Assembly (NCBI RefSeq): GCF_000315625.1
Contig: NW_005434589.1
Location: 137,330 to 201,329, forward strand
Reading direction: 5' to 3'
Source of the DNA: Guillardia theta CCMP2712
Lineage: Eukaryota; Protista; Cryptophyta
DNA: 64,000 bases
The translations under genes and the position numbers were made by a program. The notes below the pieces were generated by a model. It saw nothing but the letters and a program-made list of their open reading frames with translations. It did no database searches and was not told the origin of the DNA. Shown piece by piece: positions 19,415 to 45,200 of the stretch. Position 1 is the first letter of the stretch, and each line of letters opens with the position of its first letter.

Positions 19415-22400
19415 ATGACAAGAACTTTTGCGCAATTCGAAACCTCGCCAGGACTAGAACTACAGGCAACGAGCAAGACTGTACCTGCATGGATGAGCAG
19501 AGGTCGATGATTTTGTATGCAGACAAGATGTCTTGGTGTTGATCAGATGTGTCTTTCAGGTCAGCGACTCAGAAGCAAGGTCATCAGGACACTTGCAGAT
19601 GACTCCTCCGACGAGGACGATGGCCCGAGGTTCTCCTCCAGCGACCGCCCCTCGTCCTCCATCGTCGCGTCGGGTCACCCGCCCAGCAGCTCTCTGTGGT
19701 TTGCCGCTATTCAGAATCGGAGTCAACCTGCCCTGAGATCCTCCTTGCGATCAAGGAGAGTCGACAACCTCAGCTCGTCTTGCTCACAGCCTGAAACCAA
19801 AGTGAAGGCTGGTCACGATGAGAGCGGCACTGCTTCTCCCGATACCAAGGTGCCATCAAGACTTGAGAGACTGAGTAGCCTCCGCAATCGAGCTGCAACA
19901 GTGTCTCATGAATCGGTTTCCAACACGATAGAGCCAGATGGTGGGCGGAATGCAGAATCTTGGAGGCTTCAGACATTCGCCGAAGCCATGGGAAGCGATG
20001 GAGCTGGCTACGTCTTGCAGCAGCAAATGGTTACACACCTTTACGAGTTTTGTTGTTGCGATTTCACTGAACCTTTCACTAGGTGAAGGTTCCTATCCAA
20101 GCAAGGCATCCGTTGCTTGCTCACGAAATTCGCGGTACACTGAAACGATCTCCTGATCACCTAACTGCAACGAATGTCGTGAAGTTACGTAGAGGAATTG
20201 TTCTCACAAACAACCAAGTTTCAAATGTTCGTCACTTAGTCGGAATTGGACCCCGGGCAATCATCATAGTGGATGACAAAAAGGTTTCACCTCGATGCGA
20301 TCTACTACAAATAGCAGACGAAATGAGGATACCTATCTTTACAATGTCCTCCCGATATGCCTCTAAATTGAAATCAGATCATGTCGTGGTGATTTGTTAT
20401 GACCCCGCTGAAAATTGTTCAAGTGCAAGCTCCACAAGGCATGAAAAGATGCCCCGACAACATGACGTCACAGCTTTGCCGCAAGCCGGGCGTGCGGAGG
20501 TTCATCTTGGCGACGATTCAGGTCTGCTGTCCATTGGCTTGAAGACCTGCGATCTGACTGAATGACAGATGATGATGACTTGCTGCTTCCGGCTGCAAGT
20601 TTGGCTCATGCTGGGGTTAGAGTGTCTGCTGAGGGTGGCGAAGCATCACAAGGCCTGACCTCTGTCAATGAAACTTCCCATCTCGTTCAACAAACGATCC
20701 TCAACGATACTCTGGAACCCAGCTTGCTTGAAAACAGCCATGCCGTTTCACATGGCTTTCCAATCTTCACCAAACTTTGTAATGGCTCTGAGCAAAAGGA
20801 GGACACTCCTGAGGAGGAGAGTGCTTTTATCATGGGACTGGTCAAGTCGCTCCTTCAGGAAGACCCCCATACTCTTGCTGGATATCTCGAAAAGGCAGAC
20901 GAGATCTGGAAAAATCAGGAGACAAAGTTGTTATGGCATCGTGCGATATTGGAGATGAAAGATTTGCTCTTGGAACAAATGAAATCTGAAGTCTTGAGTA
21001 CAAGGCGAGAATTTGTGACTCGGCTGAGAAATCTGTGCAGAATTGATGATAATATAATCGTCAAGGAAGTACTGGAAGACTTGTGCTGCAACTCAAACGT
21101 CTTTCTTTTCTTGTTGACCATTATACAAGAGACGATCTCTGACGAGACGTTTCATTACAAGAAGATGCAGATCGACGCAGCAGCTTGTCTAAGGCAACTT
21201 GCTCTTTACACCAAACAGCGTAGAATTCATCTGAAGGAGACTCCTGAAATCCTGCAGAAAGCAGCAGAAGTACTAGGCAAGGATGGGGACTTTGAATTCA
21301 AGCAGAGGCTTGTTGCTTTCGTGGCGAACTTGTCGATCGATGACCCGGGAATACGTGAGGTGATGGTGAGGAATAGCGACCTCTTGAACAGCATGAAGGA
21401 TCTCTTGGAGCATGCAGACCAGAGCGCAATCAATGAGAATGTGCTTGCAGTCTTCTTCAACCTCTCGATGGATGTCCAACAAACCCAACGGATCTTGAAA
21501 TTCATCCCCATGCAGCGACTGATCGATGTCCTACTCAATGGCAGCCCGAAAGCCAAGTACCGGGCAGCAGGGCTGCTGAAGAATCTACTCAAGAACATCG
21601 AGCTGCATGACGTTCTCAGTCGCACAGAGAGCATCCGAGAGGCTGTCGCTCATGCGATGGCGCGAGGTGACGATGAGACTCGGCAGCGAGCGACATCCGT
21701 GCTCAAGACGTTGGAGGGGACCTTGAGGAGGAGTGCAGCAAGCCAAGAAGAGGATCATGGCGCCGTGCAGTCCGCTAGCACGAGGCTGCTCAAAGTTGGG
21801 ATCTTGCAGGGCACCGTTGCAGGTAGTGCAGAGGAGGCGGGAGAAGCTTCAGGTACATCTCTCCCCTCCTCCTCTCCCTTCCTCCCTCCCCTTCCCTCAT
21901 CCTCCCCTTTCCTCTCCCGCTCTCCCGCTCTCGTCTGCCTCATGGCGTGATTTGATCGGCAGGCCACGTCAACGTCATGTTGTGCCGGGTGGGTCAGGAG
22001 CCGCAGGTCTTCCATACGGCCCGAGTGAGAGCTCAGGACGGCAGGTGGGTTTGGAACGAGGAGCTGATGCTGATGGTGGAGGAGGAGCGAGCGGATCAGG
22101 TTGAGCTCAAGATGAGCTGCCGAGTAGAGAAGCCGTCGGGGATGGAGATCGGAGACGCGGAGCCGATACCCCTCAGCTACATCCTCTCCTTGCAAGACTT
22201 GTGCCTCACCTGCCCCGCCTACTCCCGACGTGACGACAACTTAGTGGTGATGCGGATGGAAGTCACTCTTTCCCTCCTCGACCAGGGCCAGCCCTCGCAC
22301 GTTGCAGCTCCTCCTCTTCCTCGCTCCGAGGACCAGCAGCCCTCCAACGTGCCCTGCTCGGAGCAGCTGAACCTGCTGTCCTACGAGTGGAAGCGAAGTC

Positions 22401-23427: not shown

Positions 23428-23775
23428 CCTGATCCCAACTCAACAATACTGAGCGATCCCCTTTCATCGCCCTCTCCTCTCTCCTTAACCCCCCCACCAC
23501 CTCTCTCCTCCGCATTTCTTCGCATCCCTCCCTCCTTTTCCCCCTCATCCCTCTCCTCCTGTCTCTCCTCATCCCTCCTCTCCTCCTCTCTCTCTCCTCC
23601 TCTCCTCTCTTCTTCTCCTCTCCTCTTCTCTCCCTCCCCTCCCTTCTTATCCCCCCTCCCCCGGTGTCCCCGCATGGCGCGATGTAACAAATAAAGCCTC
23701 GTTGCCTGATAACTAAAATCCATGAGGGGAGCCGTTGATCCCTGTCAAGGACGAGAGCGATGCGAGAGAACGAGT

Positions 23776-24110
23776 TGGGGAGGGGAGGGGAGGGGAGGGG
23801 AGGTGGAGGGGAGGGGAGGGAGGGAGGGAGGGGAGGGAGGGAGGGAGGGAGGGAGGGAGGGAGGGAGGGAGGGAGGGAGGGAGGGAGGGAGGGAGGGAGG
23901 GAGGGAGGGAGGGAGGGAGGGAGGGAGGGAGGGAGGGANNNNNNNNNNNNNNNNNNNNNNNNNNNNNNNNNNNNNNNNNNNNNNNNNNNNNNNNNNNNNN
24001 NNNNNNNNNNNNNNNNNNNNNNNNNNNNNNNNNNNNNNGGGAGGGAGGGAAGCAGGGAGGGAAGCAGGGAGGGAAGCAGGGAGGGAGGGGGCAGGGGAAG
24101 CAGGGAAGGA
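23776..24110. repeat. (GGGA)n microsatellite flanking a 100-N assembly gap (23939-24038)
   Basis: Long perfect GGGA run, then Ns, then gggaagcagggag units. Confidence 0.97.
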
Positions 24111-24200
24111 GCGTGTGTGCGAACTGCACAGTGGGATCTGATAGAGCATTCAACATGTTTATTCCTTCACTTGTCTTAGCTTCTCGCTCTTTCTTCATCT

Positions 24201-27200
24201 TCACTGGTAGGCTGGGCAGCTGTCGGCAAACATGGCGATCACGCACAGTCGGCCGTCCCCGTGCACCTGAGAGAAGTTGGCGACTAGCGGGGACGAGGAG
24301 ATCCTCACGATCCTCCGCGCGTTCATCGCCACCGCCTGATGCAGGCTGCCTCCCATCATCCGCACATACGACACCAGCTCCTCCTCTGTCCTCAGGCTTC
24401 CCACCGCCAGCCTTACCCCACCTGCAGCACGTTGGCCTGCACCAGCCGCCGCTCCGTCCTCCTCAAGCACCCGACGCCTTCCCCGCACTCCCACACCGAC
24501 CCGCGTCCTCCCCACGCCTGCGCAGCCACCTGGGCTGCTCCTCGCACGGAGAGGAGGTCCGGGTTGATGGCGAAGAGAGCCTGCCAGTTGGTCCCGTAGA
24601 GCCGCGCGACGTCCTGCAGCGTCTCCCCATCCATGACCCAGTGCTCGCAGAAGAGGACGCGGACGACGAGCCTGCGCTCGTCTCTCGTCACTCCGTCGAC
24701 CTTGAGCTCCAGCACCAGCGTCTCCTTCCCTTCCACCATCGGCACCCACGTCACGTTGACCTCGGAGGAGTTGCCAGGGCCCGGGAGCATGGGAGACTTG
24801 CCCAAGGGCTCGAAGGAGGGGGGCGAGGAGAGCAGGGAGGGCACGAGCTCGACGGAGGACCCCTGCGTCAGAGCGAAGCGAAGGAGGAGGGAGAGCTTCT
24901 CCCCTGCCTTGACCACAAGCACGTCCCCCCACTCGGGCGTGGGCGAGAGAAAGTGATTGACAGGCGGCCGATGCCCCACGGCGACGGTTGAGAGGGCTGG
25001 GCAGACGCACACAGCCTTCTCCTTGCCCGCGATGACTGCGCCCGCATCGTCGTAGAGCTGGAGGATCGCATCCAACCTGCATCCTTCTGCCCAGCTGTCG
25101 CTCACAGCGTCCCATACCACACAAACCACCCCGCTCCTGCTGGGATCCTGCTGGAGCTGGCTTGGGACGGAGAAGACAAGGTCGACCGTCACCCCCAAGG
25201 CGTTGACGCGATCGGCGAGGGAGGCGTCGGGCCAGGAGGAGACGGCGAGGCTGACGGCGCGGGAGAGGAGGAGAAAGTCTCCGGTGTAGGAGGGCCTGGA
25301 CTCCAAGAGGCTGACGGCGACCGATCGGCCTGCCGCTATCTGAAGGACGGGGTCCGAGACAGCAGCGGGAGCGAGGGAGAGGGTCACCGGTTGGTCGGGC
25401 ATGGAAAGATCCAGCGGGCCTGCTAGAAGCGCGTCCACACTGACAACCTGCTGCTGCATGGCGACCCGCGAGAGGAGGAGGCGATCGAAGCCTGAGGTGA
25501 GGGCGAACTGCATGGCGAAGGAGGCGATGAAGTCCGCAGCCAACATCTCGTTGGTCCACCACTTGCGCGCGAGGGAGGAGGCGCTAGAGGGGTCGAGGCT
25601 GAGCGAGGAGACGCTGACGGCGATGTGATTCGCCAAGACCAGCAGCTGCTTCAGCTGCGTCACGCTCATCTCCTGCACGCCCAGCTGTTTCATCGTGTAC
25701 AAGAGCGACTCGAAGGACTGGACGCAAAGTGTAACGTCGCTGGGGTCGAGCTGGACTGGAGGCTGAGTCAGCAGCGTCAGGACTTGAAGGGTGTGTAGGA
25801 TCGAGTCTTGCGAGGGCTGCTGGGCCTGATAGAGTTGCTGCATGACGGGGAAGAGGAGGGAAAAGAGCTCCTGGCGCAGCGTCAAGTTTTGACTGCCCAA
25901 GTTCGACTGCACAGCCAAAACTCCAGCCCACAACATGTCGGATCTCCCGGTCTCTTCAACTCTCGCCTTGAGTGCGAGCAAGTTCTCGTGGCCGATGGAT
26001 CGCGATGGGACTTGAAAGGAGGGCAGGACGACTCGAGTTGTCGCCCCTGCCTCATCCACCACGTTGACGGTCACGTTGAGCATCCCGCTGGGAAGAATGA
26101 TTTCCTGCTCGCTCCTCTTCACTCCCAGGGAGAAGTACCGCCCGCTCGTCACTTCCAGCTCGTACGAGTAGCTCAGCCCTGCCGCCAGTCCTCCCTCGAA
26201 CCCTTCGCATCGCAGAGCAGCGTTGAACGGCAGACTCTCTGCCTGGAGGAGGACAAGCCGACAAGACCCGCCAGGAGGCTGGGGGACGACCTTGAGCTTG
26301 CACCAGCTAGCGGGATGAGCGTGAGGTTGGGATACGGCGATGACGCTGCTTCCTTCCACCTTGCCCAGCTCGACCCCAGCAACCGCCAGCGCTGCGCCCT
26401 GACGCTCGAGTGAGTTCGTGGAGGGGTAGGGGAAGGTGTCATTGAACGTCCAGGAAATCAGCTGGAGGGCAGCTGGGAACGAGCTGGAGGCGTTGGCGAG
26501 GAGGTCGATGCCGCCCTGTACCTCCTCGAAGCAATCGACCTCGCTGAACTTCTGGAAGATTCGGATGGTCGACAAAGTCACGGCGCTGCCTCCCACCACG
26601 AGGTCTGAAGTCGCTACGGCGAACTCCATGGACGACGAGACGATGACGCGGAAGGAGTAGACCTTGCCTGCCTCCAAAGTCGCTGCATCGACACTCATGC
26701 TAACGCCATCGGTCAGCATGAGCATGCTCCCGTCCGAGAGCCTGCAAGGATCTGCACCAGTCAAGCACTGCCAGCTGTACCCGAGAGCTCCGGCCGAGTT
26801 GGAGTGCAAGACAACCGCCTCCAAGACGACTTGTTCAGTCGGCGAGACCATCCGGTTGCCGCCCTGCAACTTCACCAACATGGGCTCCAGTCTCGTGGGA
26901 GCATGCGCGTCGATCTCGATGACCGCAGAGGGGTCAATCTTGGGTGTCAACCTCACTCTGACTCCGTTGGTCGCGCTAGTTCGCAGCCGGTAGGCTGTCT
27001 CTCCGCTGATCAGCAAGGGCGTCTGATCGCTCAGCTCGTACCACTCGTACTGCATGGTGGCGTTGGGCGCCGACATGCCTGACACATCCAACGTCAGCCA
27101 CAGACAAGCACGCGGGCCGCAAGTCTTACCTAGCGATACCTCCAGGCACGCCGAATGTCTCGAGTCTGCGATGAGCTCCAGCGGTTGACTAGACGGCTGA

Positions 27201-30200
27201 TACCCGATGACCTGCAGGTAGGCGGCGGGGATGGCAAATCGCTTGCGATGCAGGCGATGCTGGAACGAGAGGACTTGACCGCCGAGCAGAGTGACGCGAC
27301 ACATGACGACGAAGTCGTTGACGTCGAGAGGAAACGCCTCTGGTCCCACTCGGATCTTGAGAGAGGTCTGCTCCACCAGCACTCCTGCAACCTCCTGCAA
27401 CCCAGTGGTGAAGAGCCTCCACTCGACCGCGAGCGGCCTTCTCATGCTCTCCAAGTCTATCGCCAGTTCCACGTCATCGCACGGCCCGAACATCGAGGGG
27501 CCGTAGAGGTGACCCAACTTGCTGGGTCTCGAGGTCACAAAGTCATCGATGACTGTGAACCCGAGGTGAACTGGCAGGTCGCGCGCGTGCTGGTTGGTCG
27601 GGGAGACGGCGGCGTCAAGCATACCAATGTAACCTTGTTTGAGAGTCGTTCCCGAACCCAACGCGACGACGAGCTCGACGTCGGAGCTGAAGTAGCAAGA
27701 AGCGTCGTAGCCGAAGGCTGTCACTGTATCGCCTGAGAACAAGCGGCTGCAGCCAAACATCGTCTTGTCCCCGACGTTGGCCGTTCCCATCACCACCGAG
27801 CCGATCCCTTGGAGGTCAATGGGCTGGTTCATGGTGACTAGCAGCATCCTCCCGTCGGGAGTCAGGCGGGCTCGACGGACTTGGAGGCTGTGGATGTAGG
27901 TGTACTCGAAGCTGAGCGAGTTCTCAACCTCCTGACGGAAAGACACTGAGACCTCAACCACCTCCCGTCCCTCCAGCTGCGGCGCCGAGGGAGGAGCGAC
28001 CAGCACGAAGCTTGTCATCCCGCTGTCTGTGGTGATGTTGCCGATCACTGCCGGCTCCTTCCCTGCGAACACAACTTGCACATCGCTCACTTCCCGCGGT
28101 GCGACAAGTCCGAGCACGCTCACTAGCACCTTGTTGCCTCCCACAGCCGAGCCCTCTCCCCCGATCACCTGCACGACCCTCTGTCGAGGCGAGTCAACGC
28201 GCATCCTGGTCGCTGCCATGAAGTTGCCCCGTCGTACGACTAGGTCATACTGTCCGAACGTGATCGGAGGCAGGAGGAAGGTAACCTCAGAAGCAAACTC
28301 GTCGTCGTAACTCACACTGTGCAGCTTGCCGAAGTACGGGCCGACGGTCAGCTCGAAGTTGCTCAGCACGTCCGAGTTCGCTGAAGTGCCACCGAAGTTG
28401 GCAAGGACCAACTTGAGCATGTTCTCAGCTCCTTCATTGAGCGTGGCAGGAGTGACTGATTCAACCCTCGCCGTGTCCCACACCTTCTCCACCGCCGCGG
28501 TCAGCACAACACCAGGGAAGATGCTGCGCTGAGCTAGAGGGACGACAGAGAGGGGGAGACTGGCGGCACCAGAAGAGGCAAGAGGAAGGAGAGCAGCGAC
28601 AGCTGTCTCCGTCTCGTCAGTTGAGATCAGCCTGTAGCTGTTGACGCCTCCTAAGCTGACGCCCAAACTCTGGAAGGAAGAAACCATCGGGAAGTTAAGC
28701 AGCAAGACTTCAACTTGGCTGCCTCCGTGAGCTGAGGCCGTGGAGGGAGTGAGGAGCCTCATCTGGACACATCAAGTCAGTCAAGTCAAAGCCATCGCGC
28801 TCACAGTTACCTCAGGGGCTGCGATGTAGGTGAAGCTCGCACTCGCCACAGTCCCCAGCAACAAGTTGCGGACTTGCAGGGTCACTCGACCAGGAAGTTT
28901 CGCTGCTGGCACTGTGATATTGACAACCAGGTCGAAGCCAGACTGGACGAAAGAACCTGCGACGATCGTCGCCTCCTGCCCTCCAACGTTCACCTTGATG
29001 TGATCGGAGTTGGCAGCGAAGAAGTTCAAGATCGTAAGCTCGACATTGCAACCTCCAGTCACGCTGCACTCCGGTTGACGCACGGCAACAGCAGGAGTGT
29101 AGAACTGGTGCTGGTAGCTGGCAAAGTGCTCGGTGTTGTAGCTCTGGAAGATCAGAACAGTCGTGCTCATCGGCATCCATACTGACGGAGTCACGAACTC
29201 GATCACGGTTCGTAGAGGAGCTTCTCCAGCCCCCCTCTGCTCGTCACTCCACGAGATGTTCTTGACGGTCCCACTGAACGGCCCGAAGGCGATCTGAACC
29301 TGATTCAAGAAGTCCTCGCCCGCCTCCGCTGCTGTCACCAGCTGCGGGAATCTCTGCAGAGCGATCTCGACCACGTCCCCTCCAGCTATCGACGAGCTCG
29401 TCGTGCTGATCGATTCGATGTGGGTCAGGTTAGTCTGCGTGTAGCTCCAGTCAATGGCGCCATCAAGCACCTGCAACAGGGTGAAACGAGCAGGGCCAGG
29501 GGAGGCCCGAGCAGGAATGGTGAAAGTCATGGAGCAGATTCGGTTGTATGAGACTCCGTTGCAGACGACGTTCTGCGCTGGGGTCGAGAGGTAATCACTG
29601 CTGTTGACCGCACCGCTCAAGTTGGTCAAGGCCAACACGAACTGAGAAGAGCTGGAGCTTCGGATGCGAACAAACACCTGAGACGTGCGATTGAGAGGCC
29701 CGATAGCGGGGTAGTAGGAGAGAAGCTTCGAGTCCATAGCGTCCACCTTGAGGGTGACATTGAGGGTGAGAGCCTGGCTCGATCGAGCTAGTGCCAGAGA
29801 CAACTTGTCACCGCTAGCGGGACACGCCAGAGATTCGAAGGAGAGGACAGTTGAGGTCCAGTCAGAGACGACAACGCTCCCTGCCGTTGATACTCCCGCG
29901 GCACTGACCAACCTGACCGTCTCTTGTTGCAGGATGGGAGACCACCCTTGGTAGGAGACCGTCAGGTTGAAAGTTCCACCAATGACGCAACTCTGAGGAG
30001 AGAAAGAAGCGATGGCAGGGCTGACGGCCACAGGTCGATACAGGAAGTCAAACTGAACGTCGGAGATTTGGGGGCTTAGGAACTTCACAAGCGCCCGGCA
30101 GAGCCCCTCCGTCGCTCGTTCTGGGTTGACCACGACAACCGACAGGCTCTGCTCTACAGGGTCTGCCATCATCTCCACCACCCTTGCGGCCCTAGAGCCG

Positions 30201-33200
30201 AAAACAACCAAGACATCATGGAGCGGCAGAGTGACGTTGGAGATGCGGAGCTCGATCAGCGTTCCTCCCGTTAACGGGCCTTCACTGACGCTCACCCTGT
30301 TGAGGACAGGAGCTTGCTTTGCACGGAGATCAAAACATCTTGCGGCATCGCAGGACTGAGGTGCAAGAACCTGTGAAGACATGTCACCACAAACAGCGGG
30401 CGACATGCGAAAACTCACCGGAGCCAACAAGACATTCTGAGCGCAGAACCAGGTGTAGTCGCAAGTTTGCTGCAGAGAGTAGAGGAAAGTAACATACGGT
30501 TGGTTGGTGTCGGTGCTTGAGATTCGGATGGGAAGCGGTCCCATCGTCATCATGGGAGGGACGTAGAAGGCAACTGTAGTGACGGAGGAGGCGTGGATAA
30601 CCTCCTGCACTTGGGCGTTGGCGCCTCCAGCACCCACATAGATCGACTTCATGTCGTTGACTTGGAAGCCTCCGACCTGCGCTATCACGAGCGAGCCGTC
30701 CAGGGGCCCGCTCATCCGGTTGAGGTCCAGGAGGGTCGGAGTGCTGAGGTCGTAGAAGGAGACGTCGACCTCGACGTCACGACTGGCCGCGCGGATGGTG
30801 ATCTTGGAGCTCGACGACGTGGCGGAGTAAACCTGCATCACCACTCGAACAACGGCACTCACGTTGTAGATCTGAGTCCTGACTAACTCGAAGGACTCGA
30901 TGCTGGCCCTGACATCAGACTTGACGTAGAGGGCAGGAGAGACCGGGCCAGAGATATCCTTGTAGTTCTGATCGAAGGACATGCTGGGGAAGAGAGGGTA
31001 GTCCTGAATGATCACCTCCAACTTCGATGGCAGACCCAGAGGCAGCGAGCGAGGCCAGACGTTGAGGACCTGAGGAACGTTCCCTTTGCCTAAGGCAACC
31101 TTGAAGCCGACGGAGAAGTCACGATTGAGAGTTGACAGCACGACTCCGTTGATCTCACTGAGACTGTCGAGTTGAGTTCCGATGGGTTTGATCGCAAGCA
31201 CCAGCCAAGAGTGATCAGCAGACACAATGTCAAACTCTTGATCCTGCAACCAACGAGATTCAATGGCGACCTGAAGCTCAAGTTTGCTCTTCACCGCCGG
31301 CATGCCAGTCAATGAGAGCTGGAACTCAACCCTGCCATCTGCGAAGAAAACTTGCTGACCCGACGCGTGCAGACGAGGGTCGTTGTACTGATAACTGAAA
31401 GAGATCGAGGAGCCAGACACAATGTCGGTGATCTCCACCATCGCTTGACAGGCCTGCTCGCAACTGGTGGGAGGAACGACGAAGGAGAACTCGGTCTCGA
31501 ACTGACTGGAGGACCTCAAGTTGAACACAGCCGCTGGTTTGCCTCCAACAGAAACGAAAACTTGCGACATCGACGTCAGGGGGAAGTTCTTGGCCAGGAC
31601 CCTGACGGGGTTTCCGCCGAGGGCAGGGCCAGAGGAAGGCTGGGCGAGGACAAGCTGCGCCCCCCCGACCACTGCGAGGCGGAACGAGGAGACCTGCTGG
31701 TTGATGGCGCCCTTGAACAGGTAAACGCTCCCAGCCCATGAGCCCTTGGGCAGAGGCTGCTGCAAGGAGCAGACCAGCAGGGCCGAGTCAACGTGAGACA
31801 CGATAAGATCCAGAGGAGTGCAGGAGACGCCGCTGACGTCGACGTCAAAGTCCGACAGTGTCGCGTTAAGAGGAACTTGTTGGAGCTCGAGATTGAGCGT
31901 CTTCTGCTCGTCAGCCTGCACTTGCGGGGGATCAACTTTTACCAGCTGGAACGACTTGGTGACCATGATGTTCACATAACCCGCAGCAAGGAGGCTGGGG
32001 CTAGCGGAGCCTTGGCAGATGCCATAGAAGCTCACAGCTTGCTGGCCAGTCGGCATGGGAGGAACAAGAACAGTTAGAGTGATGGAGTTGGCCGTCTTGT
32101 CAAGAGTCCGTTGGACGTCACTGACCTCCGCAACTCTCTGCCCAACAAATGCTGTGAAGTCACAACCAGAGAAGCTGGGGTCGAGGAGGGCAAACGTAGC
32201 CTGCAGGTACCAGTTCCCGGCTGATGGCCCGGTGCTGGGGTTGAGCTCGGCTTCACTGACAGTGTACGAGTCCATGACTGTGAGCATGGAGCTGAACTCT
32301 CGGCCTGTGCTCGTGACCGTGATAGCGGCAGGTCCCTTCATGAGGACAGGGGCGACTAAGCGAATCAGAGTCTCTGCCTTGGACACCATCACTGACTGGA
32401 ACTGCACAAGCGAGTTGTCGAGAGAAACAGCCAAGACCGTAGAGGGGTCCACACCCTCCAGCAGGACGGAGACGATATCTCCTCCAAGGTTAGAGATGTT
32501 CTGAGGGAAGACAGCAAGCAGCCTCGGAACCGGGGAGTAGAACTCTACATCCGCTTGCACTTGACAGCGCTGGGGGAATCCGTTGATGCTGATCTGAAGG
32601 GACACATTAGCGGCGACTTGAGACCAATATTTGGGTGAATCAAATTGCACGATGGAACGAGAGTCTATCTGCTCGAACTTGGCAACGGGGATGGAGACAG
32701 GACCCAGTCGGACGACGAAGTCTAGACTGCTGCTGATCGACTGAGTCGTGTGGAGCTCTACGGTAACTTTAGTGCCTCCGTCCATGGAGATGGAGGATGG
32801 GGAGACCCGGGTGATGGCAGCGCACTGAGGATCGAAGATCTCAATGGAGAAGCTGAGAGTCTGGTTGATCATGATCTGCAGCTCAACAGTTCCTGACCGA
32901 GACGCGATGGAAACGTCAGGGAGGACGAGTTGCATTGCCATGGAATTGGCTCCAGCTATCAAAGATCCAGGGGAGATGGGCACTTGGAAGGTCTGGCTGT
33001 TAACCAGGACCTGGGCAACGATTCCAGTAGCAGATTGGGAGCCGATCACGTTGTCAATCTCTACCTGAAGCTTGCCACCTGTGCTCGCGATCACGCTGGG
33101 GGTGACCTGACGAATCATTGGGGAGTGAACTGGATCATCGATGTTGATGGGCAGCACCAGATCTATCAGCTGATTGAGGGAACTGCGAAGGACGAGGACC

Positions 33201-36200
33201 GCCTGTCTCGCAGCCCCCGTGTCGAACACACTCGTGACAATCGTCGTTGCCGTGCTGTCCTGAGTCAAAGCTGACACGCCGACAGCTTGTCCATCGACCA
33301 AGACCTCAAGGCGGTCCAGCGACATGGCTGGTGCGTTGCTGACCTTGAGCGAGAGGGCAACCATCTCATCCTTGAACAGCTGGGAGGGGCTCGTGACCTG
33401 CACGACGGGCTTCACGCTGGCAGGGAAGTGAGTGAGGAAGCTGGTGGTGAGACTGCCAGCGATCCAGAGGCTGAGGTTCTTGTAGCCAGACAAGCCCAAG
33501 GCAGAGGGGCTGCGAACGAGGAAGTCGCAGTGTGAGGGTGTCCAGGAGACTCGAAGGATTGGAAGTCGCTTGCTCGACTCGAAACGGATCTCAACAACCT
33601 CGTTGGAGAGAATCTGCCGGAGATTCTCTACCCTGACCACCATCTCGCCCTCGACAGGGGGTGTAACCTTGACCTGCGTCATGCGAACGGCTCCCTGAGC
33701 AGCCTTGAGCTGGTTTGGCACGTAGAAGAAACATGAGTCAGAGTCCGAACGGAGCAGAGCGACTCCTCCCTTGGCGGAGGTCGGGTACCTCAAGCTCACT
33801 GCTGTGAAACCATCCGTTTGGTTGACACGATCCACCACAGCCTGATGCCCGCAGTCCGAGCTCGCTAACCCTCCGCAAGTGGCATCGTTGAAGCAGGAGA
33901 GGGCGCAGGTTGTACAGACATCGTCTGCTGCACACCATCCCTGGTTGAGTCCTCCTACCGCGTACGACGCGCATTTGCCGAACATGCCGCTGAAGTTGGG
34001 AGTGTCAGAGCACGAGTCAAGCGAAATGCCGAAAGTGACTTGCAGGTTCGAAGTCGATGAAAGGCTCTTGGGGATGGGGTTAGAGCACTTCGAGCACGAG
34101 GGGAAACTGAGTTGGAGGTAGAAGTTGGAGCCAGGAACAGCAACCGCAGGCGCGAGAGTGACGTCACATTTCTTTCCTGGCAGCATCACAAAGGCCTCGT
34201 CGTTCCTGAGAGTGACCCCCCCAGCGAGCGCCATCGAGACTCCGTAGACTCCGTGGGCAACGACGTCAGGCATCGATGCGAAGATCGAGATGACGTCCAG
34301 TCGGAAACGAATTGCATGCACCCCTACCATCACCAGCTGAGCTTCCTTGCCACTGAACACGAAATTCTGAGAGCGGTTGTTCGAAATGTTCATCTGAACG
34401 ATCGCCACCATCGGAATGGTTTTGTATGTTGTGCTCAGTTCGAAGAAGAGAACATCCTGACTGTCTTGATACAAAACAGCAGGGCCACCGGAGGATGGGA
34501 GGGAATGGTTGAGGGTTTCAGCTTCAGGAGAGAAAGGAAGAAAGGAAGAAATCTTCAAGGGGTCCGTGAGAACATCGATGTACCCGCTTGCAACCACAGA
34601 GCCACCCTGCCCGATGACATTGAGGGCCTTTGACTGCGAGGTCACTGCTGACATGGCAGGTACTCGACAGTTGATCGACGTCCTTGCCGTGATCGACTGA
34701 TTGAGAGTACAATCGAGAAGCTCGTTGTCCAAGGAAACCTGCAGGGCAGCTCGACTGTTACTTGCCAGCACGAGGGTCACGTTTGTTGACTCGTGCACGT
34801 AGACCATTGTGGGTCGGACACTCAGCAAGCTGTATCCCGTGCTGGGAGCGACGGAGAGCGCGCAGGAGAGGTTCAAGGATGGCAAGTTTACTTGAATCTG
34901 CAGGACAGACGAGGAGCAGACGACGGGGAGTTTGAACTGCATGAAGTGCACTCTACCCTGAGGGGTGTCAGCAGTCTCTGGAGACAACAAGAAGGGACTG
35001 AACGACGATGAGCTGCCATCGATGATCGTAACTTGAATGTTTGTGAGTCCTTGCAGACCTGAGACTCCGAGAGTCACGTTATCGCCACATTCAGCGCCCT
35101 GCCACTTCTGCGAAGTTTGGTTGTACGTGATGCCATTTCCAAGTACAGATCGGATCTGAGGAGGCTCGCAAGTATCCCTGGGCATCAAGAACTTCACCTT
35201 GCTCTGACCGTTGTGAAACAATTCAGCAATTCCCTGCCCTCCCAGTTGCGTCTGCCTGTTAGGCAGTTGGAGGCTGAGGATAGAAATAATCGGTTTTCCG
35301 TTCACAGCGTTTGAGCTCTGACGTGTAACGGAATTGATCGTTGCGTCTGCGCCATCCAAGGAGAGTCGAAACTTGCTGACGTCACTGTCAAGCTCAAAGG
35401 CAAAGTGTCGGAGGATGATTTTCATGGCACTGCCACTCGAGCATGGAATCGACGTAGGTACTGTGTCCACCACCACGGGCGTCAAGTGGTCGGAGATATT
35501 GACGATGCTGGTGGGTTGGCTGTAGCCGTTGTCAGCCATCGCGACAACACGGAAGTAGTACATGACTCCACTTGTAAGCCCAAGCTTGGAGTATCGGAAG
35601 GTGGGAGTCGTCTTATCAATCATTGGCGTGTACTCGACGATCGGAGCTTGGAAGTCAGAAGTCAAGGAGGTTTGAACCTCAAAGCTCAGCTGATTGTTTG
35701 CGATGCTGCTGGAGTCGATCGCCCATGACAAGTTGACAGCGAGGCCACTGGACGAGCCCGACCACAAGAGCGCCTGGAGGTTGTGAGGAGCAACAGCGTT
35801 CCCCATGAACTGCGAAAGCAGAGGGTCTGATGCTGGGCCGATGCCAGCCAGGTTCTTGGCGACGACTCGGAACTCGTACAGGCTGTTGGGCTGCAACGAG
35901 CTGGTCGACAACCTATAGCTTTCTCGCAGGGGCACCACGTCATAGTCCGTGTCGTTGACCCTAACGATGTAGGAGGCGAGAGGGTAAGAATTGTCGCCCG
36001 TGCCCGTATTCACCGGCCACTTCCATGAGAACACATAGTATCCCTGCTGTAGCACGAAACTGAAGTCAAGCGGGCTTGACGGCAAATCTGCTGCGCGGCA
36101 GGTTCTATACCCAGAGAAGGCACCAGCACCAACAAGGTTGTAAGCTTTCACACGGAAGAAGTACACTCGTCCTGCTTGAAAAGCCAACGAGATGTTCTCG

Positions 36201-39200
36201 CTCATGATCTTGAACTCCCGAGAAGCCAATGGCATGTCAAAGTCGACGATCGCCTCGGCAAAGGGATCAAAATTCCTTTGTGCAGAAACTTGGATGGCGT
36301 ACTGGGTGAGCTGAAACGGCACATTGGCGCCGATTCCTGCATCGACCGGGCGCGTCCAGTGGAGGGAGATAGCGAGAGGTCCTGACACAACAGCGCTCGT
36401 GATGCGAGGAGCCGAAGGGATTCCGACGCAGATCCGAGAGGTGGTGGTAGACCATGCTCCCCTACCGGCGGCGCTAACGGCAGCAGCTCGGATGTAGTAG
36501 ATGGTGCCTGGTACAAGTCCAGAGCCCTCGGACGAGAGGTAAGGAGACGAGAACTCCTTGAGACCAGGGCCTGCGAAGTCAGGAGTTGGGCAGAACTGAA
36601 GGTCATACGACAAAATCTCAAGCGATGTATCCCCGTAGCCTGTGTCTAAGGGAAGGAGCAGGACGACCAGGATGGCGTTGGGGTTGACGTTGCTCGTCCT
36701 GTTGATGAAAGGAGCGGACGGGGGAGCCGCAGCCTTCCTGTTGAGAGTGTTGGAGTGCAGACTTGACCCGACGACGTTCTCAGCGAACGCACGGAAGGAA
36801 TAGTTGACAGCCTTCTTCAGCCCGGGGACCAGCACCCAGCTCTGAGAGGGATACTGCTTGACGTAATCATAACCGTCAAAAATCACCAGGGGCGCGAAGT
36901 TGTCATTGATGGATGCCTGGACCAAGAACCACGAGAGCGACACGTTGGGGCAGGTCGTGGCGCTGCCGACCCCGATGTCACTAGGTGCCGTCCAGGAGAC
37001 GTTGACAGACAGCGAGCCAGACACGAGAGCTAAATCAAGCTGTGGAGGCTCGGGAAGGTCGATGGCGCAGAACGTGACATAGGTCACGTCCGAGTAACCA
37101 GCCTTGTTCATACAGCGAGCGTAGAGGTAATAGAACTTTCCTTTCACCAGCTCTTTCTGATCGAAGGTAGTGTTCATCGGATCTTGGTAATTGAAAGTAA
37201 AGTTTTGCACAAAGCTTGCATTTGAGAAGCTTCCATCAGGGTAGAATTGTATCGGAATAGTAGACAGGAAGAACTGAATGTCGACATCAGTGAAACCTGC
37301 TGGAGTCTCTGTCAAACCGAAGCCAATATCCGTCGGAAACTCCCAAGAGACGCAGACTGACATCGGACCACGCAGGTTGGTTGCCTCAAACTTCACAACA
37401 GGCCCTGGTTTCTTGAGCATGTATATGTCCGCCTTGGACTCGATGCTCAGCCCCAGGAGGTTTCCAGCTCGGATGTAGACGCAGTATTGGTCGCCAGTCA
37501 CGAAGTTCCTGTCTGTCACAGTGCGGCTGAAGGTGTTGTAGTCGACGACCGCCTGGTAGGCAGGGACTGAGGCACTACTCACAGAGTTGCAGTTGGAGTG
37601 ATAGAGCACGACATAGTAGTTGTCAATTATCCTCTTCTTCGGGTCCGCTTGTCTATCCGCCGGCCTGATCTCACCGTCTGTGACCGGAGCAGTCCAGGAG
37701 ATCTGAAGGGTCTTGGCATTGACGTTGATCACAGTCACGCTGGCGGGATTTGACGGCAGCTCGATGCCTCGAACGTCAACAGGCTGAGACGTTTGACCGA
37801 GTCCGTAGTAGTTGTAAGATTGGATGGAGACGATGCTGGAGTCCCCAAATGTGTCATATAAGGGACCTGCACTCGACCACTGCAAGATGATGTCAGTGCT
37901 CATGTTACACCTGCAAACAGAGTCAAATGTAGACAGCACAGCAACAGGTTGCTTCACTTACACATAAGATTCCTCGATTTGATACGTTGGCCAGATGTAC
38001 TGCGAGAGCTCAAAGACGGGGATGAACGACGCGGTGCCATTGAACAACAAGTCGAAGTACGATGAGCCTGAATTGACACAGAACGACCCAGCTTTGGCGC
38101 AGCAGGATTCCGCAGATGTGTAGTAGGGATCGTTGTGCTGACAACCAATCAAGATCTGAGACGGTTGCTCGGGAGTTGCCTCGTAGTGCATCATAGTGGC
38201 CACAGCTGCAAACATGCTGTTGTCAGCTTGGAAGACCGCCCATCGTTGAGGATTTGCCGTGTACAGGTATCTGAAGACCACAAAACCTTCGAACAAGATA
38301 ACGCCGTTGGTTGCTATGGTTTTCTCCCACTTGATCAGCATAGAATGAAAGGAACCGCTGCAAGCAACAAGACCAAATTGATTGACCGCGTTGTTCAGCC
38401 TCATGGAGAACAGTTGAACTTGAACGCTTCCTTCAAGTTCCAACTTCTGCACCTCTACTGCAGTTTCTTTCGACAGCTCCAGCACGGAAATATTTTGGCC
38501 CGAGCACTTGACGATCATGTCTCTAGTTCCAACCTTCATGTGATGCAGGCAAGCTCCACCATTGATCTCAGGAATGGAGACGTTTGCTATGAACGAGCAG
38601 TTGTGCCATTTGTAGACATTCTCCGAGGAATCTGCAGGTGAAGTGTGAGAGACGAACATCCAGAGCAGCCCCATGTCATCTCTGAAGAGCTCAACAGCCT
38701 GACTGCCTGTAGATGAAATGGTTTGGAATGGTTCGAAAGATTGACTTTCCCTGCTCCACCTGTACACCTCGACGTTGCCGTTGGTCTGGGGGAAGGTGAC
38801 CATGGTGGTGTTGCATTCGAAGAAGTCTATCACATCCTTAGCCATGCTCAGCATCAAGGACTGATGGAAGTAGAAGTAGCCATCAGGTCGCAGAGCATAC
38901 ACCATCACTTCAGTCCCCGCCGCCATGGGCAAGGTGGGGTTCCCCACGCAAGTCTCGTTGGAGAACGTGCAGGGTTGTGCCATGCTGACATTGCACGACT
39001 GGGTGGCCTTCCAAGTTCCGTTGACGGGCTTGCCGGTGCTGTCATCTACACAAACATACCCCGAAGGCTTCATGTCGTTGACGGTGAAGAGGAGGACCTT
39101 GTCTTGCTCCTCGATCAGCTTAACAACTTTGATTCGTCTCGTTCCGAAGGTGGACAGAACTTGATGGACTGACAGGTTGCCAGCAAACGTGACGTCACTA

Positions 39201-42200
39201 GGAAAGAGCTCCTCGTTGGCCTTGTAGTTGTTGCAATATTCGTCCTTGTCTCCGCGACAGTCTCCACCGAAGAAGCTAGAAGCTGAACTCTTCTGGTAGA
39301 TGGTAGTTGCTCCGGGGTTGGAGGACTTTTGTGAGTTGTAACTTGCAACAATGATGTAATGCCGACCAGCGAATTCGAAGTGTTCGACATCCGTAGCATT
39401 CCAGGACCTGAGGGACTGAAATCCGTCGGAGTCCGGTCTCATCTCATTGGAGGGAGTAGCCAAGTTCTGCTCTTGTTCTGCGTCACTCACGCCGCCGGTG
39501 AAGGGGTAGGAGCGGAGATGCTTCTCTGTCACCTTGAAGATGTAGTCGTGAGTGAGGGTGTCGTTGACCTGCCACGAAACTTTGGCCTTCATCGCCTCCT
39601 TGTACTCTACTGCCGGTTGCGTCACTGCCGGGAGGTAGTTGGACTGCATTTGCAAGGCGGCGGACCAATCAGACCAGCTGCTCCATCCTACGACGCTGCG
39701 CGTTCTGACCAGGAACCTGTAGGCCTTTCTGAACACGACGGAGGTCGCATTGAAGACGTAGTTGTCGGTCGAGGGGACACGGGCCAAGGTACTGTCCGCG
39801 ATGGTAACGGAGAAGTTGTAGGTCGTGTCATAGCTGACTTCGGTCATCTCTTGACTGCAGTCCATCCAGGGCTGACTGCTACAGCAGGTCACAAACTTGC
39901 TTTCAGTCAGCTGGATGACCTCAGCTTCTAGTATGGAGTAGCTCCTGTTGCTGGCGTTGACCGCTGGGTTGTTGATCGTGACCTCAAATCTCAGCCACCT
40001 CATCGCTACGCTCTTGATCACCGGAGCATCAGGAACGCCCGTGATCGCAAAAGGATCGACGGTCTCCAGCCAGACACCGGGGGAGATCCGATTGAAAGCT
40101 CGCACTCGGAACAAGTAACTCTTGCCCTCTAAGAACTCCGTGTAGAGAGGCCAAACGATGGTGCTCCCCGTGGTCTCGGTCAAAGGCAACCAGCTGATTG
40201 AGTCTGCGAGCTTGTACTGGAGCTCGTAGCGTACGAACGCGGCATATGGGTTCGAGCTGTCACCGTGTACCCCTACTCCCATATCGTCGGGGATTGTAAG
40301 GTTGAAGACAAGAGTCGTTCCCACAATTCGAGTCGTCATTGCAGGCGCTGATGGGGCTCCGACGATGACCGAAGTCTGTTCGCTGCTATACGGGCCAAAT
40401 CCGTAGGCGTTCTTGATTCTTATTCTGAGACCGATTCCTTTCCCGTTGAGAGGTCCGGACTTGTTGGCAGGAGTGTAATCGATACCCATGAAGTTACAAC
40501 ACTCGGTGTACCCTGCACAGCACTGATAAGACTCAGTCTCCGAGAACAAAGTCGATGCGCCTGAGAAGAATCTAAACAAAAGCTCATAGCCCAGGTAGAA
40601 GTAGTTCTGATTCGAGGTGTAATCTGCCATCGGATTCTTCCATGAGATCGCCATGGTCAAGTTTCCAGTTGCTGTCAAGGCGAGGTCGGAAGGCGGGGCG
40701 GGGCTCATCATATTCAGATCGCTCTGACAGTCGAGCTGACTGGTCAAGCTCTGCGTCCAAGCAATCAGACTTGAGCTATCGAGTGAGCCGGTCGGGCAAT
40801 TAGAGGTTTGATTGAAGTTGTAGAACTCGATCAGACCGACTGCAGACTCTAGGTAGCAGGAGGGGTCAGAGCATGAACGGTTCTTCGCTACCAGAGTGAC
40901 TGTCGCGTCATCACTCACTGTGCCGTTCACAGTACCGTTGGGATCGATTCTGCGAATGTCGGAGAGGATGAACCAGACGGAAGCACCCGGATAGAAGTAC
41001 CTGTTGAAAGAAACAGAGATGCTCGTGTTCGTGTTGCTGAGGTTGACGTCTACATTGAATGTGCTCACTGTCTTGGAAGGAAGACCTGCCTCAATCGAAA
41101 TGAACTCAAAGTTGCCTCCTTCAGAGACGTTCAAGGTCTCTGGAATCTTCATGCTGGTCAAGTCAAAGTTCTGCAGGAGCCCTAGTCCGAACTCCAGCAC
41201 GATCTCGCTTTCCGGGTAATACTCAGTGGAGAAGGTGAAGGAGACGTTGAGGTACATGCTTTGATTGAAGCCGGGGAACGGCACATGGCGAGAGGGGATC
41301 ATCCTGAGCTGCAGGTCGCGGAGAGAGCCAGGCTGCAGCACTCGGCTCTGGGAGAGGTACTCGTCCACCACGAACCCTCGAGACGAGATCGTCTGGATTC
41401 GAAGGTCCAACAAGTCGCCCTGCCTCCTGATCGGAGTTTGGATCCCAGATATCTGAAACTGCATGACGGCGGGGAGCTCGCTGATGGGGCCAGGGAAGTG
41501 CAAGTTGATCGCAGAGCGGACCTTGGCCCTGCACAGCTCGTACTGGGGGGCGAAGTCCTGAGTGAGAGAGGAGCAGAAGAGTTCTTCATTGGTAAAGTTG
41601 TGGGAAATGTTGACGTAGTGCTCAATCTGGTGACCCATCAGAACCTGAGCTTCCTCCAAGTTGAAGCCATCGTCGAAAACGATGCTTAGGTTTGTGAACG
41701 TGTGACCAGCTATCGGTTCGAAGGTCACATTCACGATCATCTTGGAGCCAGCATAATACTCCGCAGTTGCTACGAACACTCCCTTTGACGCTCCACTGGG
41801 TTGGATCTTAACAACCTCTCGTTGAGAGGGAACTATGGAGCTACTTGACAGCGGATACGGAGCAATGACTGCGTTGATCAAAGCTTGACTGGTGAACTTC
41901 ACCGTGTCTGAGTCGTTCGCCGTGCGCAAGATGAAAGTTGCACTTCCCGCAGACAGTCGGTTCTTGACTCCCGTGATAGTCAGGTTGTAAGAGACCGAGG
42001 ATGGAAGGCTGGTCGTCGGGCGGAAGTAGAACGCTCTGCCGTACTGGCAGCAGCCATGAGCCGTAGAGCCTTGATTGCACGTGCAAGGCATGCCGTTGAG
42101 TGCTACACTGACCATGGTCGAGTCGATCTCGAAAAACGCGGGAAAGTCAAGCACGAAGAAAGTTCCTCCCACGATTCCGTTGGAGTTGTTTACAAGTAAC

Positions 42201-45200
42201 GTGACTACCGAGTCACTCCCAGCGTAGGAAGGGCTTAGAGTGACTGCAGAAAGCAGCTCTTGCGCATGCAGGTACAAGTTGGGAACTGGCATACCCGAGC
42301 TCAACACCAACACACTACCCTTCTGCTCCAGTCTGAGCGTAAATCCACCCAATCTTCCATCGAACTTCGGGTTGATGACACTTGCAATTGAGAAGTTAGC
42401 AACAATGTCGGAACTTGATACGCAGGAAGGAATGTCTGCAATGATGTATGCGATGGGGCAGCTGTCACACTGCAAGCCGGTACAATTCTTCCCGACGTAG
42501 TTGTAAGCCTCCCAAACTGACTCGCAGCCTGGTGCAAAGGTCAGAGTACCGATGCTCTTTCCGCAGTTGATGGAGAATCCTGCAGGAAACATGACCCGCA
42601 AGCTGGTGCCGTAATTGAGGGCGATGGGAGAATGGAAGTAGAAGTTGATGTTGGAGAACGAGGAAGTCAGCGTGTTGGTCAGGTCGATGTTGACGTTGCG
42701 GAACTGAGATGACCGCACAGTGAGAGTCTGCGACGAGAAAGCCTGCAACTCGTAAGGGCTTCCCTCCTGCAACAAAGTTGATACCCGGACACTACCAGCA
42801 TCCCCGACGAAGTCTGGGTTCCTGACGTTCTCCAGCACAACTTGGAAGGAGGTGCCTTGAAGTTCCTCGGGCGGGAAAGTGAAAGTGACACTTCGGTTGT
42901 TGACGCTGAAATTCAAGGAGCTGTTCCCAGCCATCACTGTTACGGCCGCCAGGTCAAATCGAGCAGGAAACTCAATCTTGCATGCCGAACCCTGCGCGAG
43001 GGGAGCGACGGTGGCGAACTGGATGGAGAAGTTACTGAGTGCCAAGATTGCACTGTCACTCTGCACAAGACTGCCGGACACAAATGCTTCAGGAGTCACG
43101 GTCACACCAGCCGCAGTCCCTGAGTCAACCACACTGCCGTCCGCTACTGTCGATCTCAAGTAGAAGGAACCTGTCGACCCAGAGAAGGAGGGGAGACGGA
43201 CGTTTGAGACCTTGAAGGAGACAAGCTCCCCCAGGGGAAGGCTGCCGTCCAGCTGCACGCGAACGATCTGACTGTCACTGAATATGTCTGGATACTTGGA
43301 ACTGAGCAAACTGTTGGTAGAGCTCATGCAAGGAGAAGTGCTGGCGTAGTTAGGTGAGCTGCACTGCACAATAGAAAAGAAGAAAGGAACAGCATCAAGA
43401 TTTCCGCAGGAGGAACTTCCACACTTCGAAACTGAGCTTGTTGCCTTGTCAGCCTTGATCGCCCTGGGAAGAAAGATCTCCAGATAACCTGCATTGCCGT
43501 TGAGCGGTGGGATCTGATTCTGAAGCTTGAAAGTGAGGATGAGATCGCAGAGACTTCCAGCACTTGACCGACTTGAAGCGACCGATAGCGTCATGCTTCC
43601 GGTAGAAATCAAGAAAGAAGGAACCAGGATGCCTCTCTCCACTACAACATTGCACGTGCGGGCAGACTTGAGACATGCTGTCTGCTGGGAGTAGTCGATT
43701 GTACGGACTGCAAAGGTTCCCGTGGGTCCAGCGCTCTGCCGCATCTTGATAAAGCCTGTGCTGTTCAAAGTGATGTCGAGGGTTTGTTGGGAGTTGACGT
43801 CGAAGGGCAGTTTGAACTCAACATCTTGACCGGTCGATCGGATCATGTCTTCTTCAAGATTCCTGAAATCTTTCAAACCTTGTACAAACTCCCACGGGAC
43901 GAGGTCATATGGCCCTGCAGCAAAGAGCCTTGCTATCGATTGGTCCATCTGTTTGGTCTTGCTCAAGTTTGCAAGGGGAGGAGGAGTGGCTAACGCCGGA
44001 GTTGAAACTTCAACCATGTGGTTGTGTGATGCTATGCTGTTGCCATGTCGGTGGATCAAGACGTGGTCGTGGGATCCTGTTGTGCTGAAGCAGTGGCAGT
44101 CAAAGCTGCCTCGCTCGCACGTGCATGATCGATCGACGGTCAATGATCTCGCCACGAGGTACTGGCCGATGGTGTACTGGAAGCCAGCCGATGGAGCCGC
44201 AGCGATCTCTGATATGGTGGCGTACCTGTCTGCTTGCGAGTAGCTCAAGATCTGTGCAGTCTGCTGGAAGTTGCTTCCTTGGAAGACAACCATGAAGCCA
44301 ACGCAGCCTGAGTCTTGAACACAATCATTTCCAGGCTGGAGGTGGAAGCCGTACGTCGTCGCATCCTGTACTGTCCCGCTGATGAGCTCGCCGACACGCA
44401 CAATGTGTGCGTGAGGTAGGTCGGATCCTGCATGGGACCCGTGTGAGAAGACGTGAGCGTGATACATCGGGTCAAAGTCAAGGAAGCCGGTTGTCTGTAT
44501 TGAGGCGGCATCGTAATAGTTGAACCGAACTGGTCGATTTGACAAGGAACCAGTGAAGCAAGGATCAGTGGTAAAACAGCAGCCTTCGTTCTCGCAGGTC
44601 AAGCTTTGATCGATGGAAACATCGATGAAGATAGCATCTTTGCTTGTCATCGGAGGGACAGTGCACTTCAACGTCTGCTTCGTGCTGTCGTACGTCGCAG
44701 TCACGATCTTGGTGTCGAAGATACATCTGTAGCTCCTATCCAGTCCACTGAGCGCATATTCACTCTTCATAGACAGTTCGACAACGGTCCCTCCTGCTGA
44801 ACTGGCGAAGTTTGGTGAGACCTTGCGGATGAATGGAGCAGTGCTGCAATCAATCCCTGTCCACGGATAGCGGCAATTGCACACAGACGTTATGCAGTCA
44901 CCTTTCTTAGATCCTCCGCAATTGTTCGGGCAAGCACCAGGAACAGGTTTGTAGAGGGTGATATTGACGTTGTCAGAAGAGGACAAGGATAGGTTCTTAG
45001 ATGTCGTGAAGGTAACTTCAATCGGCAAAGAAGTCCTGTCCGAAGATTGGACAATGCTGCAGTAGGAGCTTTTAGGGCAATCGACAACCACCAGCATTTC
45101 TGTATCCGTGATGGAGTTGACATGAAGTGGCTCGCCTGCCAAGACGGGAGTCACTTGACCTGATTGGGAGACGAAACCGGCTCCATACACAGTCACGGTC

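Follow-up and report, generated by a model that had tools for sequence, protein, structure and literature searches.

A giant secreted REJ-GAIN protein of Guillardia theta with an Ig-like domain and two predicted LysM units at its C-terminus instead of a membrane region

The window, a stretch of 64,000 nucleotides of eukaryotic DNA from Guillardia theta CCMP2712 (contig NW_005434589.1, positions 137,330 to 201,329), contains a giant gene on its minus strand (24201-58008), which runs from an ATG at 58008 to a TGA stop codon at 24201-24203 and comprises five exons and four introns. The encoded protein of around 11,200 residues begins with a putative signal peptide, continues with many β-sandwich, FN3, TIG and EPTP modules and ends with a REJ domain, a GAIN domain including its GPS motif, an Ig-like domain and two predicted LysM units, after which the stop codon follows. 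The gene is intact, and its product is a giant secreted modular protein without transmembrane (TM) or glycosylphosphatidylinositol (GPI)-type segments. GAIN domains have been studied almost only as membrane-proximal self-cleaving switches of adhesion G protein-coupled receptors (GPCRs) and polycystin-1. An earlier note on this DNA had proposed a polycystin-1-like REJ-GAIN/GPS module capped by LysM domains, and all sequence motifs it quoted could be located on the minus strand, in the open reading frame (ORF) 24413-28762 and, for the second LysM-like stretch, in a different frame (24201-24416).

The gene was assembled from four long minus-strand ORFs (47053-58008, 37958-46888, 28781-37957 and 24413-28762), which were joined across GT..AG introns; according to frame arithmetic done by hand, removal of the introns leaves a single reading frame. 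Exon 1 (57936-58008) encodes the start of the signal peptide and is separated by intron 1 (57885-57935, 51 nt, GT..AG) from exon 2 (47075-57884), which is followed by intron 2 (47025-47074, 50 nt, GT..AG), exon 3 (37962-47024), intron 3 (37911-37961, 51 nt, GT..AG) and exon 4 (28811-37910); exons 2, 3 and 4 are each a long ORF. The last intron (intron 4, 28763-28810, 48 nt, GTAACT..CAG) precedes exon 5 (24201-28762), which contains the REJ domain and all that follows it up to the stop codon. Once intron 1 is spliced out, the encoded N-terminus looks, by eye, like a classical signal peptide with a charged beginning, a hydrophobic core and a TSA/Q-type cleavage site of small residues; the core appears to continue past the 51-nt intron. 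Beyond the signal peptide, no 19-residue window has a Kyte-Doolittle mean above 1.75 and the last exon contains none at all; downstream of the GPS motif, no 19-mer exceeds 1.6 through to the stop codon, a distance of about 270 soluble residues. In the upstream exons, Pfam matches to fn3, TIG, EPTP and DUF7949 were obtained, and the N-terminal exon of 3651 amino acids (aa) yielded zero Pfam matches. The EPTP (47 bits, aa 2490-2532) and DUF7949 (32.6 bits, aa 654-682) matches are located in ORF 37958-46888 on the minus strand.

The REJ domain lies at 26030-26800 on the minus strand. The Pfam family REJ (PF02010) matches aa 655-911 of the last exon with an E-value of 8e-8 and 31.7 bits (cut-off 25), and the REJ motifs are found at aa 662-907 of ORF 24413-28762, which confirms the proposed REJ-like region. 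A search of the whole genome (87,145,349 bases, 669 contigs) gave 34.2 bits at the same position of the last exon, and the REJ domains of homologs reach 81-101 bits.

Downstream of REJ, the GAIN domain (24968-25990, minus strand) is predicted to consist of a helical subdomain A (aa ~925-1089) and a β-rich subdomain B (aa ~1102-1265). An AlphaFold2 (AF2) model of this region (m6ae964663233, around 340 residues, 13-sequence family alignment) shows seven helices followed by a β domain. When this model was compared with the PDB using Foldseek, the GAIN domains of BAI3 (4dlo), BAI2 (8oek) and CELSR1 (8vy2) occupied ranks 1, 2, 4 and 6 with a best E-value of 7e-8, and VIA alignments yielded Z-scores of 10.7 for BAI3 and 10.0 for CELSR1. 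The β subdomain alone aligned with the GAIN-B subdomain of CD97 over 122 residues (Z 9.4, root-mean-square deviation 3.0 Å, VIA). The modeled structure thus has the two-subdomain GAIN fold, a helical subdomain A and a β-sandwich B, in agreement with the helical GAIN-like stretch that had been suggested.

The GPS motif at 24977-25123 (aa 1214-1262, minus strand) contains four cysteine and two tryptophan residues, which align with those of canonical GPS motifs. The copy in the window has no Pfam match of its own; however, the GPS motifs of the homologs P0011 (39.5 bits), P0003 (25.1 bits) and P0006 (25.8 bits) score above the Pfam cut-off, and hhalign aligned the family profile to seven canonical GPS genes found elsewhere in this genome with a probability of 98% (E 1.5e-13). 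The earlier assignment of a GPS motif is therefore upheld by the residue pattern and by the family, but not by a Pfam match of the window copy. Furthermore, the family profile matched solely adhesion-GPCR GAIN/GPS regions and LysM proteins among all PDB sequences. The autoproteolysis triad of the window copy is A-L-S instead of H-L-T, and since an alanine stands in place of the catalytic histidine, the domain is probably an uncleaved structural module. The paralog L003 carries S-L-A and the paralog L005 lacks the motif, so that all three copies of the genome are without the catalytic histidine. H-L-T is retained in the relatives P0003, P0004, P0006 and P0011, and self-cleavage is likely in some members of the family.

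The C-terminal pieces were searched separately, and the intact paralog L003 was used as a stand-in for the continuous C-terminus. Between GPS and LysM lies an Ig-like β sandwich (24647-24961, minus strand; residues 1268-1372, model residues 348-452), which aligns with many Ig- and filamin-type domains with Z-scores of about 9-9.7; a weak Pfam match to Filamin was found in P0006. The single β-rich module that had been noted at this position is thus an Ig-like domain. LysM 1 occupies 24399-24643 (minus strand, start at aa 1374). The LysM1 unit of L003 reaches 21.6-23.5 bits against the Pfam LysM (PF01476) cut-off of 20.9, and 13 of 15 C-termini of the family match Pfam LysM. The family C-terminal profile matches the fungal chitin-binding effector Ecp6 (4b8v) with an E-value of 1.8e-10; bacterial LysM endopeptidases, SafA and CEBiP rank next. 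In the AF2 model of the last 272 residues of L003 (predicted local distance difference test (pLDDT) 78, pTM 0.76), the Ig sandwich is followed by two β-α-α-β units, and in LysM1 a β hairpin comes after helix 2, ahead of the last strand. The first unit therefore agrees with LysM in its profile and in its β-α-α-(hairpin)-β fold, as judged from the family profile and the paralog model. This hairpin corresponds to a Cys-stapled insert at ~24437-24547 (minus strand) of 25-45 residues, which is kept in homologs. Its pattern W-x-C ... G-C occurs in most family members and is absent from P0011, P0017 and P0024; members that lack it reach canonical LysM scores (30-58 bits). To our knowledge, no LysM domain with such a disulfide-type hairpin insert has been described. 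The second, putative LysM unit (24234-24383, minus strand) is diverged and is followed by a conserved C-terminal Cys motif; it has no Pfam match in either the window piece or L003, and in P0017 Pfam recognizes the homologous unit as LysM (two stretches, 58.6 bits). In a Foldseek search with the Ig-LysM-LysM model of the paralog, Ig matches filled the list and the LysM fold was not confirmed by structure search, and a structure search of the ESM Atlas returned generic Ig-like matches only (TM ≤0.43).

The reading frame of the last exon is interrupted shortly before its end. The assembly reads GGGG at 24416-24419 and has a stop codon for the ORF at 24413-24415, so that a different frame (24201-24416) holds the last 71 codons. 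A Logan contig of run X1 has one extra base after 24415 at a depth of 6, and L003 carries GGGGG at the homologous site and reads through to the homologous stop codon. The 71 codons behind the shift are open, share around 76% protein identity with the paralog and end at the same stop codon; the position of the TGA at 24201-24203 (minus strand) is the same in the paralog and in the homologs. One G is missing from the G-run of the assembly, a homopolymer error, which causes both the false stop codon and the change of frame. The apparent break between the two LysM halves is not an intron. Two candidate introns were considered and discarded: the segment 24437-24547 (111 nt, GTGCGA..CAG, in frame) encodes the same Cys-hairpin in homologs and paralogs, and a micro-intron joining the frames near 24386-24420 was dropped in favor of the 1-nt homopolymer deletion seen by comparison with the X1 contig and the paralog. 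With respect to transcription, around 6% of one raw run of 12.8 Gb, labeled with the same species, contained six RNA reads on 24130-30100, four of them with at least 99% identity, and the final 200 bases ahead of the stop codon are among the sequence covered. Two putative RNA contig sets had no match to the region. The reads are compatible with weak transcription of the gene.

When 1.8 billion representative proteins were scanned with phmmer, 27 relatives were found, all of them 'hypothetical' metagenome proteins, and about 12 of these share the order GPS, Ig-like domain, 'FCEH' LysM, Cys-containing insert, second LysM-like unit and Cys motif, after which the protein ends. Within the genome, L003 on contig C234 is 68% identical to the window copy, and a third copy, L005, is present on contig C77 as an open frame of 6062 aa with the same ending. 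The C-terminal cassette thus characterizes a conserved family of few members, which occur in this genome and in aquatic metagenomes. Since two paralogs and about 12 metagenomic relatives share this C-terminal end, no membrane exon appears to be missing from the giant gene, and the soluble C-terminus predicted in the earlier note is supported by this shared ending as well as by the lack of a hydrophobic stretch after the GPS motif. Two further homolog searches add little, given their limits on length and words: one with aa 620-1405 of the last exon found none, and one with the family profile returned only seven short LysM proteins. A shorter relative, L004 (G000:C51:516485-519700, ORF 13-1989), has the same 'C.H' LysM pair and no GPS motif within the locus; its hydrophobic Leu/Ala/Ser tail may represent a GPI-type signal or else an intron that was left unspliced. 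The cluster of P0001 also contains the fragment P0028 (NCBI MGB1595782.1), which shares at least 90% identity with P0001, a relative of the eukaryote type. Its database entry assigns it to the metagenome-assembled genome (MAG) of a 'Promethearchaeia archaeon', most likely because a eukaryotic contig was binned into this MAG by mistake.

REJ genes are strongly expanded in G. theta: the Pfam cut-off is exceeded at 40 or more separate loci, many of which lie in open frames of 2000-6000 aa. The genome also contains eight canonical GPS loci. The other giant GPS genes (L006-L012) have homologous GPS motifs, and most of them carry REJ upstream. In L006, L008, L009 and L010, TM helices immediately follow the GPS motif, whereas in L007 (G000:C23:287698-290811), L011 (G000:C50:69310-72420) and L012 (G000:C121:206540-209668) an HLT-type GPS motif is followed by hundreds of further ectodomain residues. 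These include Cys-rich EGF/furin-like repeats in L011 and L012, and a single TM helix is located around 300-470 residues past the GPS motif in L007 and L011. None of the genes L006-L012 ends in LysM. Because L007, L011 and L012 carry further ectodomain after the GPS motif, the rule that GPS directly precedes TM1 is relaxed in this lineage, and the LysM-capped form with zero TM helices is the extreme case.

In PKD1 and adhesion GPCRs, the GAIN domain marks the membrane-proximal end of the ectodomain, and the GPS motif of the polycystin-1 family is followed by a PLAT domain and an 11-TM region. Members of this family (PKD1, PKD1L, PKDREJ and the sea urchin REJ proteins) likewise have REJ directly followed by GAIN/GPS, and there, too, these domains close a very long ectodomain built of modules. 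In contrast, the window protein has no TM helix, PLAT domain or channel-like region and ends with the Ig-like domain and two predicted LysM units; accordingly, neither a Pfam match to PLAT or PKD_channel nor a TM segment was found in the last exon. In addition, the GPS triad is ALS in the window copy and HLT in the polycystin-1 family. The GAIN domains of the adhesion GPCRs BAI3, BAI2, CELSR1, CD97 and latrophilin share the four-Cys, two-Trp GPS motif and the two-subdomain layout; however, the window protein lacks the seven-transmembrane (7TM) region, no 7tm Pfam match being found in the last exon, and the last GAIN strand leads into the soluble Ig-like domain. Ecp6, the best sequence match of the C-terminal profile, and the plant proteins CEBiP and CERK1 have multi-LysM ectodomains held by disulfides and also combine tandem LysM domains with conserved surrounding cysteines, but the window protein has only two predicted LysM units, the second of which is strongly diverged, with a Cys-stapled insert in LysM1, and these are fused to a GAIN-bearing protein of around 11,000 aa. 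A full-text literature search found no paper pairing LysM with a GAIN domain, a REJ domain or a GPS motif, and a search for Guillardia and polycystin matched only radiolarian 'polycystine' papers. The individual domains are known, and the REJ-GAIN-Ig-LysM-LysM architecture is new. It also departs from the published pattern of a GAIN domain directly before a TM helix, as every GAIN domain analyzed by Arac et al. (2012; PMC3321182) immediately precedes the first TM helix.

The genes next to the giant gene are unrelated to it: a convergent ARM-repeat gene lies at 20562-21947, and a dihydrouridine synthase is encoded at 62227-63309. A long (TCCC)n/(GGGA)n microsatellite at 23760-24110 of the window encloses a gap of 100 N (23939-24038) just past the stop codon; on both strands it produces spurious ORFs that read 'PSLPPSLP' and 'GGREGGRE'.

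The LysM module occupies the position of the membrane anchor of PKD1 and adhesion GPCRs, which makes a glycan tether the simplest reading. The protein is probably an adhesin of the surface coat or extracellular matrix, in which the predicted LysM pair would replace the membrane anchor and tether the C-terminal end to a glycan containing N-acetylglucosamine. In this model, the secreted giant protein would reach the surface coat or the extracellular matrix, where the LysM pair would bind the glycan in place of a lipid bilayer anchor. If glycan binding holds, a glycan of the cell's own surface coat has about an even chance of being the target; bacterial peptidoglycan or foreign chitin is a somewhat less probable candidate, and something else would be distinctly unlikely. 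Self-made chitin seems unlikely as the ligand, since neither chitin synthase nor GH18 turned up in a six-frame search of the genome; this would leave the glycans of surface glycoproteins or bacterial peptidoglycan.

Several observations weigh against a sugar-binding, membrane-free adhesin or weaken its support. The pLDDT of the GAIN model, 65.7, indicates moderate confidence. LysM1 of the window copy scores 13.2 bits with Pfam LysM, below the cut-off of 20.9 and for half a domain, because the insert splits the domain and only its first half is contiguous; the LysM proposal of the earlier note consequently holds for the paralog and through the match to Ecp6, but falls short of the threshold for the window copy itself. 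The two-LysM fold was taken from the model of L003 and not from the window's own sequence, and sequence support for LysM2 is weak, as its sub-profile aligns with that of LysM1 with an hhalign probability of 76.5% (E 2e-5, 27 columns). The loop between helix 2 and strand 2 lines or borders the sugar groove of LysM domains, and the hairpin insert could therefore extend, retune or block sugar binding. Moreover, the six RNA reads stem from one run, none of them crosses a junction and none shows the 3' end. Finally, the six-frame search of the genome found no Chitin_synth_1, Chitin_synth_2 or GH18, although the blank for Chitin_synth_1 is weak, since its control was detected nowhere.

Part of this evidence would fit a different function of the C-terminus, in which the LysM-like pair no longer binds sugar and serves as a disulfide-stapled docking module for a protein, such as a membrane receptor or a periplast plate. 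The strong divergence of LysM2, the conserved Cys hairpin in the loop between helix 2 and strand 2 of LysM1 and the failure to find chitin synthase or GH18 would all be in line with docking, but the signature of LysM1 is kept, the family profile retains its match to Ecp6 and the insert-free members score as canonical LysM proteins, so that we regard docking as fairly unlikely. Other doubts concern the gene itself. The window copy might be a decaying or silent pseudogene with a real frameshift at 24416, in which case the LysM2 tail would not be made, and the GGGG of the assembly, the stop at 24413-24415 and the low number of RNA reads could be read in this way. However, an independent read contig contains the extra base, the codons behind the shift are conserved down to the stop codon and around 33 kb of upstream ORF are intact, which makes decay very unlikely.

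It would be even less probable, indeed hardly credible, that the gene model is incomplete and that a TM exon beyond the stop codon or within the gap of 100 N is spliced on, turning the product into an ordinary PKD1-like membrane protein. A possible GTGAAG donor does overlap the stop codon, and the assembly gap begins 165 bases downstream; yet in L003, L005 and about 12 homologs of other organisms the protein terminates at the homologous residue. The check for TM exons past the stop codon and the gap found none: the downstream (TCCC)n repeat encodes low-complexity Pro/Ser/Leu sequence without a TM-like run in all frames, and the convergent ARM-repeat gene comes next.

A further idea builds on the glycan-tethered adhesin. 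In relatives that kept HLT, the GAIN domain would cut the protein and leave the giant N-terminal piece held non-covalently on an Ig and LysM fragment of ~270 aa. One may speculate, though the idea is doubtful, that pulling force then releases the giant fragment from the glycan-bound LysM piece, so that GAIN would act as a mechanical fuse or in shedding in the surface coat of a protist, as a membrane-free 'split protein'. If true, this may show a role of GAIN before its coupling to 7TM or 11TM receptors.

Taken together, the secreted, LysM-capped REJ-GAIN family shows that this module can work without a membrane partner. With its natural cleavable (HLT) and non-cleavable (ALS) versions, the family offers a simple soluble system for studying GAIN mechanics, and it provides a giant protein as a candidate for a glycan-tethered adhesin in the little-known surface biology of cryptophyte-like algae and in their contacts with bacteria.

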